From Wallemia ichthyophaga EXF-994 (lineage: Eukaryota > Fungi > Basidiomycota): a DNA stretch of 32,000 nt. Both the position numbers and the translations under genes were made by a program. Under the pieces are notes generated by a model, which worked only from the letters and a program-made list of their open reading frames with translations, was not told the origin of the DNA and searched no databases. The DNA lies in assembly GCF_000400465.1 (NCBI RefSeq), contig NW_008806287.1, forward strand, positions 150,001 through 182,000, read 5' to 3'. How positions within the stretch are numbered: position 1 is the first letter of the stretch; each line of letters opens with the position of its first letter. Shown here one piece after another: positions 8,049-32,000 of the stretch.

Positions 8049-8189
8049 TTCCGAAGATGATTGTCCAGGTCCAAAGTGCAAAATGAGTAGTATTTCATAT
8101 CAAAAGTGTGTAATGATATTACCTTTATCTGAAGACTATCTTGATGTTAATATATGAGGGAAAAATTAAAAGCAAATTATAAAAAGATG

Positions 8190-8276
8190 TCCTCCCACCC
8201 AGAATCGAACTAGGAACCTCAAGATGTGCTAGGTTTCAATTACAGTCTTGCGCTCTGCCAATTGAGCTATAGGAGG
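8190..8276 (-). tRNA. tRNA-Tyr(GTA) with a 14-nt intron (8226-8239)
   Basis: Minus strand CCTCCTA TAGCTCAATTGGCAGAGCG CAAGA CTGTAA [TTGAAACCTAGCAC] A TCTTG AGGTT CCTAG TTCGATT CTGGG TGGGAGG A. Shows C1-G72 and A73 Tyr identity, A and B boxes, an intron after position 37, and a T5 terminator at 8181-8185. Confidence 0.96.
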
Positions 8277-8293
8277 CTATAATTGAAATCTAA

Positions 8294-8658
8294 AATAAAA
8301 CAAAGGTATCAAATTATCTGTCCAGAACGTATACGAGTTCTTCAAACCGCAATTGACTACGTACCAAAGATACTCCGTTGGTTCAATGTAATTGAGAACC
8401 ACCAACAATTTACAAATTACGACGCTAGTCAAGAAACGCTCCCAGTAAATTCAGCACCCCCTTTGACTCCTCATGCTTTAAGAACTATTTATGGACGCTG
8501 TTTAAACAATTATTGTCTTAACAATATATTTAGATTTCATCATCATCAAATTTATCCCATAACGACGCTTTCCAACATTAGTTGATTATCAGGATGATCT
8601 TCAGCTCGCTGAGATATTATTAAAGTTGTTTTGTAAGCAATTTTCGGACACAATTCTC
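8294..8658 (+). mobile_element. Copy A: severely 5'-truncated non-LTR retrotransposon 3' remnant
   Basis: 8332-8391 encodes YEFFKPQLTTYQRYSVGSM*, 12/19 identical to the C-terminus of copy B, with the first 15 nt identical and the stop at the same position. It is followed by an AT-rich tail region with CATCATCATC near 8538-8547. Outer boundaries are inferred. Confidence 0.6.
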
Positions 8659-24505: not shown

Positions 24506-24551
24506 CAACCTTTATATCTTTATCTGGTGTTGAGCGTAATTATCAAGAGGA

Positions 24552-26093: not shown

Positions 26094-29000
26094 TTATTCA
26101 TGTTGCATATGTTGATTTTGATTTTGATTCGTACTCGTACTCGTACTTGTATTAGGTGGTAAGAAACTACCTCCTCCAAACATATTTGGCCACCCAGATG
26201 TCCCACCATCTCCCCATATGCTATTAGATCTACCATTCCTAGTCATTTGATTACTATTAGGTGTTACGCTCCCTGTTACTCCCGCAGTCGGCCACCCCGT
26301 CTGTTTATCCAGACTCATCGGCAGTGGCTGCCAAGTGCTTCCACCTAATCCAACTGGTGCCATCTGTGAACTTTGTCGCCTTGCTGGTCTTTCCACCACT
26401 TCATCATCTCCACCTCCTAGTGCTGAACTACCAAGTAATTTACCCACTGAAGGTGCTGACGATGATTGATCTGGTGTTGTATTTCCACTTGGTCTAGATA
26501 TCGGTGTTGGTACTGCAGATATAGGTGGTCTGCTAACTGCTCCGACCGCTCCAAATCCAACTGGTCTTGCTGACGTTGAGGCTGACGCTCCCGCAGATGG
26601 CCCGGCTAACAAGCTATCTTCACCAAGATTCAAACCCGCAACTCCTCCACCAACACTTCCAATCGGTGACTTTGACTGTCTCTTCCCACCGAACAAACCA
26701 TCATCCATCGAGTTACTTTCAAATGCAGTTCTTGTCATTGAGGGTGGTGATTTCGCAAATCCGTATGCACCAAAAGGTGTCTGTGCATTTTGCGTTCCAT
26801 TAGGAATCAGACCTGGTGGTGCTACCCCCACTCTAGGTCTCTGTTGATGTTGTTGATGTTGTTGATGTTGATTAGAAGCTGGACTATGCATCTCTTGTTG
26901 TGAATAAAATGGCGGCCTTTGAATATTCCCATTAAGTAGTGCTGAAGGTGCCTTTGGTGCATCTTGCATTTGCTTGTCTTTCGTTGGCGTCATCATGTAA
27001 GGTGCTGTCGAATTATGAGCTGGTGGTGACCTCATTGGCATCAACCCAGGTGCAGCTGCTGCTCTTGGTGAAGGTGATGATGTAGATGCTTCTGGGTTTT
27101 GTAACTGTCTGTGGAACTGTGCTCGCTGTGCTTGAGCTGCTGCTTGTGCTTGAGCATGTGCTTGCTGTTGACGAATCTGCTCCATTCTTGCTTGTTGAGC
27201 TTGAGCTTGTGCCTGCATTTGAGCCTGTGCCTGAGCTTGAGCTTGAGCCTGTGCCTGTGCCTGCTTCTGCAACTCTTCTTCGTGTGCTTTATCTGCTTTA
27301 GCTTTTTGCTCAGCTTCATATGCAGCAGCACGTTCCTTTTTACGCTCAAGTTTGGCAGCCTTAGCTCTCTCCTGCTCCTCCTTCTCTGATTTAAGCTTAT
27401 CTTCACGCTCCTTTTTCTTACGCTCCTTCTCAGTTTCTCTTTCCTTGTGGATTTCCTGTTGACGCTGTCGCTCAGCCTCACGACGACGCTTCTCTTCCTC
27501 TTTAGCTTGTCGCTCTGCTTCACGACGCTGTCTTTCAGCTTCTTGACGTCGACGAGCTGCCTCTTGTGCAGCATCTGCTTTGGCTTTCTTAGCTGCCTCC
27601 TCTTCTGCAACTTGTGCTCTCTTAGCTGCATCTGCTTCCTCTTTTTGTTGACGCTGAAGACGCTTTTTGTCTTTCTTACGCTGATTCTCTTTGGCCTTTT
27701 TAGCTTCCTTATCCGCTGCAACCTTGTCTTCCTCCTCAAGTTCGCGGAGAAGTTGTAATTGACGTTCTTGTGCGACCTGCGATTACTTAGTTGTGATGAA
27801 TAACGTATATCACAAACCACTCACCTTCTCACGATATGCCTGTAATACACGCTGTTCAAACATTCTTGCAGCAAATACTTGGAACATTCGACGACCATCT
27901 TCCATACGCTGTTGAGTGTGAGTTAGAATAAAAGATGCACTTAAAACACACTAACATCCTCATCATCATCATCCTCCAAAAAATCGTCATCTTCTTCATT
28001 ATCATCCTGCTCATCTTCTTCTTCACTATCATCAAATCCAGCAGCAGCTTCTTCCTCTCTTTGTAAGCGTCTTTCAGCTAAACTTTCCATCATTTCTAAG
28101 AACTTTTGTCCGTCGTTTCTCAAGAGATCATCAGCAACGGTGAGTATTCCACCTAGAGCTAAAAATCAATAAATTGAATAGTTGTAAATTCCAAATAATA
28201 CGCACCTTGTACTGTAAAAGTTTTCGAGAATGATGATGTGAATATCTCTGACTTCTTCCTTCTACTGTTGCCATGGCGATAGCGACGTGAATTAGACAGA
28301 CTGTCTTGCTCATCGTCGTAGTCATCATCACCCGATATATCATCGTCAGGGTCATCCTCATCGTAATCCTCATCATCTTCGTCGTCGTACTCATCATCGA
28401 GGTCATCATCATCATCGCCATTATCGGGTGGTTGAACTAACTGACCGTTCTTGTCAAGTTCCACAGAACCTGGAAATGGACCTGGACCGGGAGGCGGTGG
28501 AATTGTAGTAGGAGAGCTATAATGCTGATATTGATGTGCGACGTACTGCTCGAGTTCATCATAGTAAGCATCGTATAAAACTTCAAGTTCATCTTCAATT
28601 GCTGAACGCTTTCTACCACAAACAGCGCAAGAGCATGAATGCTTCTGCTGCTCCTTCATTTTTCGAAGGACAGTCTCTTTTTCAACTTGTACTAGCTTTC
28701 TTCGCTCGTCTTGGGAGAGAGACAACCAGAATTCTTTTATACGCTCGCGCTCCTCAGTTGAATTAGTGGACCAAATCTTCTTAGCCAGAGAAGAAGAAGG
28801 AGGCTGCTTATTTGTGGAAGAAGTTTGAGATGATTTAGATTTCGTCTGATTTGTAGCGGCATTTGACCTCATAGTGGACTGTTGAGGTAGATAAGACATA
28901 GGAGCTTTTCCAGCAGCCCTAGAAGAAGGTGGTGGAGGTTGAGTGACTGGTGGGGGTGGAACTGGCTGAGCAGGTGGTGGTGGTGGTGGTGGAATAGAAT

Positions 29001-29786
29001 TTGTATTCAACAAATTATTAACTTTTGGCTGAGCAGTGGGTTTAGTCTTCTTATTCTTCCTCTTCTTCTTCTTTGAAGGGGCGTCTGTAACACCATTCAA
29101 ATGCTGTTCAGACTGTACACCAGGAGTAGTAAGAGGAATTACGCCGCTATCGTAAATGACGCCAGAATGATAGTTGTACTCGCCGTCAGTACCATCAATA
29201 GAGTCAACGTCATCGTCTGTATAATACTCCTGATCAAAGTCATCATGCCTCAAACCGCGTGAAGGTGGCGGACCAAGCTGCTCCAAAGCGAAACGAACAG
29301 AAGGATCACTGAAATCGAATGAGCTAGCTGGTGGGGGAGCAGGACCATGAGGAACGCCTTGAATCTGAGAATTGTTGTTGTTGTTGTTGTTTGGAGGGTA
29401 ACGCGTGGCAGACGCAATTTGCTGTGCGACGGCCTGCATAGCTGCAGCAGACATCTTTGGAGGGGTGTGGTGGTTGTTTGATTGCAGCTGTCCGAGTGGC
29501 AGAGCATTTCTAATGAATTGTCGTAAGTGGGCTGGGAGACTGGACCAGTAAGCGTCATCGTCTGGGAGTGAACCTGGGTGATCAGCGGACATTCTAGCGT
29601 ACAGGGAGCTAGCTGTTGCTAATAAGTCTAAAGATATATGAGAACAATAGGGCTGCACTGCGATTTGGACTAACCATGGGCAGTAGCTGCTGCGTCTACA
29701 CCCAAATTCCATTGGCCACTGAGATCTGTATGCTGGCTATGCTCATCCACTTTCTTCTGCTGTCCTTTCTTCGATTTCGCGGGCAT
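26094..29786 (-). CDS. NST1: Stress response protein Nst1
   Basis: [102 protein letters not shown], then a long coiled coil and a low-complexity tail. An extra exon 1 (MPAKSKK.., ATG 29786) joins through intron 29628-29674. Confidence 0.92.
27130..27265 (-). repeat. (Ala-Gln)n coding repeat within NST1
   Basis: [37 protein letters not shown] from GCTCAA/GCACAG hexamers. Confidence 0.85.
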
Positions 29787-29994
29787 AACGTCGTCGCTCT
29801 GAACTAAGGTGAAATGGCGCAGGGATTCGGTGAGAAGTTATTTAAAAATTGTACAGCTAGTGCTATCTATCCTTTATATCGTATATTCAATTCATTTTAG
29901 ATAAAAAATCTTTTTTATTTTCATAGCCATCGTCCTGCCGTTGAGGACTTGTTGGGAGGACTGTGCGGATAGTGGCAGGCGTGTTAGTTAGTTA

Positions 29995-30792
29995 TTACAG
30001 TCGCTGCTGTGCGTGGTATAGCCAAGCTATTTGCATCGGCTCACAGCTCAGCGGCCTCTGCCTTTTTATAAAGTCGACAGCCCGGAATACAATATCTGCG
30101 TTATCAGTATTGTTTTCGTTGAGGTCATCGTAGAATGGCTTTAATTTGTGGTCTTTGCATCGTATAAGCTCGTTTAAGGCTATAAATGTTGCACTTCTGC
30201 CGATCCCTGCTGAGCAATGCACAACACAAGGTGATTGCCTATCGAGTCTACGCAAAAGGGTTTTTAAAGAGGAAAGTGATTTCGGCGCGGAGTGATCTGG
30301 CCATATCTTGTAGAGTATATGACGGGTTTCAAGTGATTTAAAGGGCGTTGTTATCTCGATAATCGTTGTCAGACATTCTTCGTCCTCATCTATGGACTTT
30401 TTTGTGATAGTAATACCATCCAGCTGAATAAAATCGTTTGGCAGGTAATAATCAACCTTTACTCTCCCGCTCTCGCGATAATTGGACAGCTGTATGATAT
30501 CACGGGCACCTTCCTCGAGAATCATCGTGTAGAATGATTGCAGCGTGTGCAACGGTGGTGCTTGTGTGGCTATAAACATCTTTGACTGCCCAATATCGCA
30601 ATTAAAGTCGTTAAACTGCACGACGGATGCGTTGATATACTCCACTGTGCTCGGCAGGCTTTCATCGTAGCAGAGTATATTTGTATACCTATTAAACGCG
30701 ATAAATCGCGTTGACTTGGACTTTGATAAAGATTTCCTGTCTAATCGGACTTTCTCTCGTCGAGACAGCTCTTGAATGGAATCAGCCATCAT
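29995..30792 (-). CDS. Classical protein-tyrosine phosphatase (PTP1/Pyp3-like)
   Basis: NRYTNI, YINAS, FIATQAP, WPDH loop and the VHCSAGIGRS signature. No other Met lies between the ATGs at 30792/30789 and the NRY motif. Confidence 0.92.
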   Translation of the reverse strand: MMADSIQELSRREKVRLDRKSLSKSKSTRFIAFNRYTNILCYDESLPSTVEYINASVVQFNDFNCDIGQSKMFIATQAPPLHTLQSFYTMILEEGARDIIQLSNYRESGRVKVDYYLPNDFIQLDGITITKKSIDEDEECLTTIIEITTPFKSLETRHILYKIWPDHSAPKSLSSLKTLLRRLDRQSPCVVHCSAGIGRSATFIALNELIRCKDHKLKPFYDDLNENNTDNADIVFRAVDFIKRQRPLSCEPMQIAWLYHAQQRL

Positions 30793-31096
30793 TGATTGGG
30801 TGAATGAAGCACTCGAGGATCAGCAACCAAACAATCTCATCAATCAGCTCGATGATAAGTTCTACAAGCTCATTTCAAATATAAACGAAAAAATTCAGTC
30901 CATCGACTACGATAAATCTCAGTTAGATGACCTCAATCGTTTGGCTGTTGAGTTGCAATCGCAGTTATCTCATTTACGTAAAGATTTGCGCTCTCTACCT
31001 ACAGACGATGTACACCTATCTAAACTAAACACTCTCTCGCGTCTGCACTCCGAGTTACTGACACAAACTGAAAATCTTCGCAACTCATTCATTTGA
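30776..31096 (+). CDS. 106-aa helical protein resembling the N-terminus of COG7
   Basis: Intronless ORF with a single Met, filling the whole gap between two conserved genes. IIDWVNEAL followed by amphipathic heptads resembles the COG7 N-terminus (DVxxWINxAL..). Identity is from memory and unverified. Confidence 0.55.
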   Translation: MESAIIDWVNEALEDQQPNNLINQLDDKFYKLISNINEKIQSIDYDKSQLDDLNRLAVELQSQLSHLRKDLRSLPTDDVHLSKLNTLSRLHSELLTQTENLRNSFI

Positions 31097-32000
31097 TCCA
31101 ACATTCCCCCCATCAATCAGGATATTGAACGTAAAGTCCTTATACTCCTCCTCTGCCTCGTCCATATGCGGCGTCGATGGCGGCGTCATGGTTCGGTACG
31201 TATACGTTACTTGTAAGACAACCTAGACCTTTTCATCAGCATATACCTTTTCTTTACCAAAACTCACCTCTAATCTCTTTGCGTCTTGGTATACTCCCAA
31301 TTCAAACATACTGTTTGTCCAATTACCCTTGCTCTCCACCAGTCCGACAGACTTGGCCTCTGAGATGCGTCTTGCCTGACTCTGCACCCACGCCTCCTCT
31401 TCAAACTCCATGACATCGTTGAATGCACCTATCTCATACTCCCCCTCGTCTATACGAGCTTTGCAGCCACTCTGGTGCACAACTTTCATCCTGATCTTCA
31501 TAGCGTCGTACAGTGGATTGACTGTATGCATCTCAAACACATACACCCTCCCTCCTCTCAACTCTCCATTGCTTGTGAGTCTCGATCCTGTAGGTTGCAG
31601 CGCCATCCGCGCTATCCTCGCGTTAATCGCAGGCAGGTAGTTATTAGCTGTCATCTTTATCTTGTGTTTAGTGTGTGATTTGGTATCTGGTTTGATGAGG
31701 ATATGCCTACACGTAGCGCAACGTTTGCTGTATTTTGTAACTAGTTTGATTCTTTGAGGTGTCTGCAGGTGTTTGTATATGCTAGATGGATATGAATTGC
31801 TCGAGTTGTGAATGTCGTGGAGATCTGTGGCATTCCTAAGAATGTTGAGTTTATCAAACTCAGTCTCTGCCAAAGACTCCAGCTGCCTATCGCTCGTGTC
31901 TGGCGTTGCGTGTGCCGGGTAGAGAGGATGGAAAGCAACGTCATCTACGAAACCGTCAACGCTAAGGAGAGACTCGAATTTACTTCTGACATGCTCAAAC
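31085..32000 (-). CDS. DCTN4: Dynactin subunit 4 (p62), 5' end outside the window
   Basis: LVTKYSKRCATCRHILIKPD..KIKMTANNYLPAI..VNPLYDAMKI. Intron 31223-31267, then a last exon VVLQVTYTY..KDFTFNILIDGGNVGSNE* with stop at 31085-31087. Confidence 0.88.

Follow-up and report, generated by a model that had tools for sequence, protein, structure and literature searches.

We found that a plus-strand open reading frame (ORF) in the salt-loving fungus Wallemia ichthyophaga EXF-994 is very likely a real protein-coding gene, wedged between the genes for dynactin p62 and a protein tyrosine phosphatase (PTP) and overlapping both of them, probably through loss of the spacers. We regard it as a gene because a comparison of five lineages revealed an intact frame with an excess of differences at third codon positions. 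The three coding sequences (CDSs) abut without a non-coding base between them, an arrangement that is shown by the comparison across lineages to be old, and substitutions in all three reading frames are distributed in the manner of coding sequence. Both the small gene and its head-to-head overlap with the PTP gene were already known, as they are present in the NCBI reference annotation (GCA_000400465.1), which gives the small gene with 106 aa. Added here are the validation across lineages, a corrected p62 model that exposes a second overlap at the tail of the small gene, an ortholog that is unannotated in W. mellicola, and the age of the head overlap.

The window is the whole stretch of DNA that was analysed, 32,000 nucleotides, and window coordinates equal those of the record KE007237.1 (GCA_000400465.1, W. 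ichthyophaga EXF-994) minus 150000. The small gene occupies 30776..31096 on the plus strand, stop codon included, and encodes an acidic protein of 106 aa that is predicted to be all-helical. The CDS of the PTP, a classical protein tyrosine phosphatase of 265 aa encoded in a single exon, lies on the minus strand (29995..30792). The two CDSs overlap head to head for 17 nt (30776..30792, both strands), which read M-E-S-A-I-(I) on the plus strand and M-M-A-D-S-(I) on the minus strand. At the other end, the small gene meets the last coding exon of dynactin p62 (DCTN4; 31085..31222, minus strand), which consists of 45 codons (31222..31088) and the stop codon TGA (31087..31085). This exon is preceded by an intron of 45 nt (31223..31267, GTGAGT...TAG) and by an upstream coding exon (31268..32000) that leaves the window; its coordinates were taken from positions 8320..9570 of L012, an annotated 20.8-kb locus, and the start codon would fall at window coordinate 32473. 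The tail-to-tail overlap of the two CDSs is 12 nt long (31085..31096, both strands; plus strand TCATTCATTTGA).

An earlier, sequence-only reading of this DNA had proposed the same geometry, and its coordinates were verified, including the statement that no non-coding base lies among the three CDSs. The small ORF begins inside the PTP CDS with the ATG at 30776-30778, for an overlap of 17 nt, or 14 nt when counted from the second PTP Met, and its TGA (31094-31096) lies beyond the p62 stop (31087..31085), for a tail-to-tail overlap of 12 nt. That reading had also noted that neither overlap is easily removed: there is indeed a single Met in the 106 aa of the small protein, and after residues 1-2 of the PTP the next Met is residue 72, past the NRY motif. 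The 45-nt intron that it had described as clean has GT and AG ends, and the frame of the exon after it could be worked out. Its broader claim, that the small CDS overlaps both neighbours and that neither overlap can be removed by remodelling the genes, is backed by the comparison across lineages.

Conservation of the small reading frame

An in-frame TGA (30773-30775) immediately precedes the ATG of the small ORF, so the ORF has no upstream extension. At 43% GC, the probability of finding no stop over 106 codons is ~2e-3 per frame start; judged from the sequence, a single open frame of this length is not significant by itself, and its conservation is. Intact orthologous ORFs of 105-106 codons were found between p62 and PTP, on the strand opposite to both, in five Wallemia-like lineages. 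These are W. ichthyophaga (the window and L003-L005), which served as the reference for protein identities; a Logan assembly (L008), in which the small protein is 78% identical to that of the window; an ENA metagenome (L001 / L002; 74%); W. mellicola (L006 / L007; 67%); and ENA metagenome scaffolds with 26.8% GC (L009-L011; 32%). The sequence-only reading had named stops or frameshifts in the ORF of related species as evidence against a gene; the ORF was found intact in all five lineages.

The p62 of the AT-rich relative (L009-L011, 26.8% GC) is 45% identical to the p62 of both W. ichthyophaga and W. mellicola, and the lineage is placed outside both species because it is equally distant from each. 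It keeps the order of p62, small gene and PTP as well as the head overlap, and the p62 intron and the tail overlap are absent. A 41-kb Logan contig with P0129 was grouped with the same lineage.

In every lineage, the frame of the small ORF is the only one of the six that is free of stops, and the remaining frames contain 3-26 stops. In the lineage with 26.8% GC, the probability of no stop over the ORF is ~9e-5. Differences between species by codon position (first/second/third) were 27/13/61, 21/10/53, 32/22/66, and 11/5/36, and the third-position excess was significant in every species pair (chi-square p = 1e-6 to 1e-8). The dN/dS comparison across relatives that the earlier reading had proposed gave a low ratio for the least saturated pair, L001 vs L008 (NG86, dN 0.065 and dS 0.99); dS by this method is saturated in more distant pairs. 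The alignment of seven small-protein sequences has 25 invariant columns at 32% overall identity, and all of its indels are in-frame.

The ortholog in W. mellicola CBS 633.66 is intact as well (L006 5379-5699, minus strand, scaffold JH668239.1; also in L007). It encodes 106 aa, with overlaps of 12 nt with p62 and of 17 nt with PTP, and neither NCBI assembly of W. mellicola has a gene annotated at this ORF. All contigs found to carry the small protein in our contig searches were genomic, and none of the three proteins was found in the table of differentially expressed genes of Zajc et al. 2013. The entry GME1674 (1251 nt) in Table S4 of that paper was considered as a guess for p62, and neighbouring identifiers gave no confirmation. 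Tryptic peptides predicted in silico from the small protein include IQSIDYDK, SQLDDLNR, LAVELQSQLSHLR, and LHSELLTQTENLR.

The overlaps with dynactin p62 and the phosphatase

The 447-aa model of p62 matched the Pfam family Dynactin_p62 (PF05502) with 178.8 bits against a cut-off of 25.3, and the spliced protein is 76% identical to the 'Dynactin subunit 4' of W. mellicola CBS 633.66. The reference annotation keeps the p62 intron instead, and its p62 model then has 416 aa and stops at 31223, which leaves 126 nt to the small gene. The tail overlap is hidden in the reference annotation because of this retained intron.

One alternative, which we consider improbable, is that the small gene is real and the tail overlap is not used, since p62 would be made mostly as the intron-retaining 416-aa form with its CDS stop at 31223. 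The GeneMark-ES reference model of p62 has this length, and intron retention is among the types of alternative splicing scored by Zajc et al. 2013 (PMC3849046). Pfam did not discriminate between the two models, with 179.1 bits for 416 aa and 178.8 bits for 447 aa; the alignment to a distant p62, however, did so. The start of the last exon, VVLQVTYTYR, aligns to LLVTYNYKS in the p62 of Pilobolus (Mucoromycota), within a conserved 'L.VTY.Y' strand. The last exon is also conserved in L001, L008 and L006, with 3- to 20-fold more third- than second-position changes (for example, 4/1/21). The L009 ortholog of p62 has no intron and reads through the exon junction, and spliced models of 447/448 aa have been adopted in the annotations of W. 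mellicola and of the 2019 W. ichthyophaga strains. Moreover, read-through of a retained intron meets different early stops in other species. An example of the peptide encoded by the C-terminal exon is TMTPPSTPHMDEAEEEYK. Judged from these comparisons, the 3' end of the reference p62 model is probably incorrect and the spliced 447-aa form is favoured; a retained-intron isoform of 416 aa may also exist.

With the spliced p62, the 12-nt tail overlap (TCATTCATTTRA) was found in the window, L001, L008 and L006, which shows, on the aligned sequences, that it is common to the four closer lineages. It is absent in L009, in which the two stops are 35 nt apart. The overlap reads TCA TTC ATT TGA (S-F-I-stop) on the plus strand and TCA AAT GAA TGA (S-N-E-stop) on the minus strand. 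The C-terminal F-I of the small protein is invariant, including in L009 where there is no overlap, and the tail of p62 is variable apart from the N-E that lies antisense to F-I. Since F-I is held without the overlap and the p62 tail varies, it appears to be the small protein that sets the constraint on the tail.

At the other end of the small gene, the PTP matched the Pfam family Y_phosphatase (PF00102) with E = 1.9e-39 and 136 bits against a cut-off of 20.9. Its translation carries the catalytic C(X)5R signature VHCSAGIGRS and the WPD loop WPDHSAP, and an identical product of 265 aa is present in NCBI/UniRef for the W. ichthyophaga genome. The protein starts with MMADSIQ (its two ATGs begin at 30792 and at 30789), and its orthologs share the N-terminus MMADSIQEL. 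The first ATG is in a poor context, with T at -3, and the second is in a better one, with A at -3 and G at +4. Some strain annotations begin the PTP at the second Met, which would make the head overlap 14 nt rather than 17 nt.

Both ATGs and both reading frames of the head overlap are kept in the five lineages. Four lineages have an overlap of 17 nt and L009 has one of 20 nt; the single 3-nt indel that accounts for the difference preserves both frames. The comparison shows that the head overlap is older than the split from the AT-rich lineage, which is deeply divergent. Within the overlap, the small-gene and PTP frames share their third codon positions. Among the four closer lineages, substitutions occurred only at 30781 and 30784 (A/T at each), which are both shared wobble sites; the change at 30784 is synonymous in both proteins, and the change at 30781 exchanges E and D in one protein and D and E in the other. 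Conservation within the overlaps is not creditable to either gene alone.

It is very improbable that the head overlap is a start-codon artefact, with the true start of the PTP or of the small gene at a non-AUG codon or in an exon spliced on from upstream. The context of the first PTP ATG is weak, as noted above, and both N-termini are predicted ones. Against this, the in-frame TGA directly 5' of the ATG of the small ORF is present in four lineages, and the PTP open frame offers no upstream in-frame ATG, GTG or TTG and none of these codons downstream before the catalytic domain. Both ATGs have been retained in five lineages with a 3-nt indel as the sole indel in the overlap, and the annotations made independently for W. 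mellicola and W. ichthyophaga begin the PTP at its first Met or at its second, with which an overlap of 14 nt remains. An upstream exon of the PTP would sit inside the small gene and lead to a larger overlap. All lineages have a CT-rich tract 15-25 nt before the small-gene ATG; as a speculation, this is a candidate initiator region.

The small protein

The small protein of 106 aa has a pI of 4.8 and contains 18% leucine. AlphaFold2 with the seven-sequence alignment predicted helices at residues 4-15, 18-42, 47-72, and 81-105, at low confidence (pLDDT 62, pTM 0.37). Pfam searches with the window protein and eight orthologs gave only coiled-coil-type matches of 16-17.5 bits, against cut-offs of 24-29; the families concerned, all below threshold, included Syntaxin, STX6_10_61_N, and HSBP1. 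Searching the PDB sequences with a profile returned only generic coiled coils (E >= 0.005), and a Foldseek search of the PDB with the model of pLDDT 62 gave a best E of 0.24; its weak matches included FAT domains and designed 3-helix bundles. When 1.84 billion representatives and a 5.8-billion-cluster collection were searched with HMMER profiles, only Wallemia-like orthologs were retrieved, and a match to a 3793-aa protein was rejected as spurious because it was matched in six separate stretches. To judge from these searches, the small protein is so far confined to Wallemia-like lineages.

Syntaxin Habc-type N-domains, HSBP1 and FAT-domain-like bundles resemble the small protein in size and in its predicted all-alpha architecture. 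However, the small protein falls below all thresholds for these families, and the likeness is one of generic helix packing and not of membership. We rejected membership in the syntaxin N-terminal, HSBP1 or other named helical families, as there was no significant profile or structure match. Our best guess for the protein is a small subunit or adaptor of helical-bundle or coiled-coil type.

A protein that has no domain match and no homologs outside its lineage, and whose gene is apparently uncalled in the annotations of W. mellicola and of the 2019 W. ichthyophaga strains, could in principle not be a protein at all. The ORF would then be transcribed without being translated, or would be no gene, and its conservation would result from constraint on the promoters and UTRs of its neighbours. 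We consider this very unlikely. Regulatory constraint gives no three-base periodicity of substitutions, whereas here 61 of 101 differences fall at codon position 3. Nor would it hold one frame open for 105-106 codons in five lineages, one of them at 26.8% GC, or preserve 25 invariant columns with only in-frame indels. In addition, ~290 nt of the small ORF are shared with no other CDS. Three further readings were rejected: a chance ORF, as the frame is kept open in all five lineages; membership of the ORF, as an exon, in a larger plus-strand gene, as the stop and the ATG are conserved and nothing is conserved downstream on that strand; and conservation imposed by an antisense CDS, as there are stops in every minus-strand frame across the ORF.

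Genome compactness and known types of overlap

The W. ichthyophaga genome comprises 9.6 Mb with 514 genes/Mb, and CDSs make up about three quarters of its sequence (PMC3849046; PMC6738226). Our view of the genomic context rests on the 20.8 kb of L012. The gaps between neighbouring CDSs in this locus are, in order, 245, 33 (divergent), 403, 142 (divergent), 126, -17, and 208 nt, followed by 101, 101, 46 (divergent), and 111 nt; the gap of 126 nt becomes -12 with the corrected p62. The two tightest gaps were confirmed in a separate check. The 46 nt separate the start codons of a Peptidase_C48 gene (minus strand) and a Yippee/Mis18 gene (plus strand) at window coordinates 24506-24551. The 33 nt separate those of an ankyrin-repeat gene (minus strand) and Nup88 (plus strand) at 2916-2948 of L012, outside the window. 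Because nearby divergent start codons nearly touch, promoters that lie inside genes are probably common in this genome.

The sequence-only reading had called the arrangement very unusual for a eukaryote. This is overstated for W. ichthyophaga, in which distances of 33, 46 and 142 nt separate annotated divergent start codons in the vicinity, and short CDS overlaps are documented in Giardia muris and microsporidia. Overlaps with a neighbour, 21 bp long on average, affect 9.5% of the genes of G. muris (PMC7641422), and overlapping genes have been noted in microsporidia (PMC6899921). Overlapping transcription in compacted genomes is on record as a phenomenon; our literature search found no paper describing gene overlap in Wallemia. 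The small-gene locus is the extreme of a continuum in a very compact genome.

The overlaps would be by-products of the loss of intergenic DNA. Once formed, they would have been locked in, since any change must suit two proteins. This is in line with two observations: only shared wobble sites vary in the head overlap, and the variable C-terminus of p62 is fixed as N-E by the invariant F-I of the small protein. Because the overlap of the CDSs at the head leaves no bases between them, transcription of the small gene would start inside the PTP coding region and that of the PTP inside the small gene. The mRNAs of these two genes would then have complementary 5' ends, over a stretch of 17 nt or more, and those of p62 and the small gene would overlap by 12 nt and both 3' UTRs.

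In a second reading, the start-codon overlap is a maintained regulatory device that couples expression of the PTP and of the small helical protein. We consider this unlikely. If it were so, each promoter would lie within the other gene and the 5' ends would necessarily be antisense to each other; the coupling could operate by transcriptional interference or RNA duplex formation, leading to either/or expression, and the lineage-specific small protein might itself have the phosphatase or dynactin p62 as a partner.

The finding is no new kind of biological system. It suggests that a free-living fungus, and not only parasites and nucleomorphs, tolerates coding overlap on both sides of one gene over long evolution, and it raises the question of how transcription starts and 3' ends form without non-coding DNA between genes. 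The locus also offers a natural experiment, if a small one, on the constraints of dual coding.

Loci of this kind are handled poorly by annotation pipelines: the p62 intron is left in the reference model, the small gene is missing from the W. mellicola annotation, and fused models occur in other strains. In one strain, a public fusion model joins the PTP to the neighbouring NST1 in a 'partial' protein of 1021 aa (P0134, window ~26094-30792, minus strand), and a model at 17754-20798 of L012 combines Mito_carr, RRM and Lactamase_B domains in 1134 aa. Tight gene spacing seems to mislead gene predictors. Two further observations were made in the window. The long ORF of the NST1-like gene (28159-29712, minus strand) contains marked low-complexity runs (poly-Asn, poly-Pro and acidic D/E) together with several tandem repeats of short length (28352-28417). 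A single tRNA gene of 87-88 nt at 8189-8276 (minus strand; Rfam 55 bits), for which ARAGORN named no anticodon, probably contains an intron.

We compared the locus with three known types of overlap. In the compact genomes of Giardia muris, G. intestinalis, microsporidia (Encephalitozoon) and nucleomorphs, overlaps from a few bases up to some tens of bases are found, as here, between adjacent protein-coding genes with very short spacers, and they are read as an outcome of compaction. In contrast to these organisms, Wallemia is a free-living, intron-containing basidiomycete and neither a parasite nor an endosymbiont remnant. Here, moreover, one gene is overlapped on both sides, each time by a gene on the opposite strand, and the head-to-head overlap is conserved across lineages whose p62 is only 45% identical.

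The second type comprises divergent genes with bidirectional promoters and head-to-head cis-natural antisense pairs in yeasts, plants and mammals. Transcription proceeds apart from a shared short region in these pairs, as it would here, and in some of them the 5' ends cross, so that the mRNAs are likewise complementary at their 5' ends. Elsewhere, it is normally UTRs or introns that overlap in divergent pairs, with a nucleosome-free promoter of at least 100 bp between the start codons. Here, by contrast, the CDSs themselves overlap, and therefore no dedicated promoter DNA is left.

The third type, tail-to-tail cis-natural antisense pairs, is common in Saccharomyces and other fungi. The 3' ends of convergent genes overlap in such pairs, and those of p62 and the small gene must do so too. 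Whereas the usual pairs overlap in their 3' UTRs only, here the last four codons of each gene contain the stop codon of the other, with TCA...TGA read on both strands.
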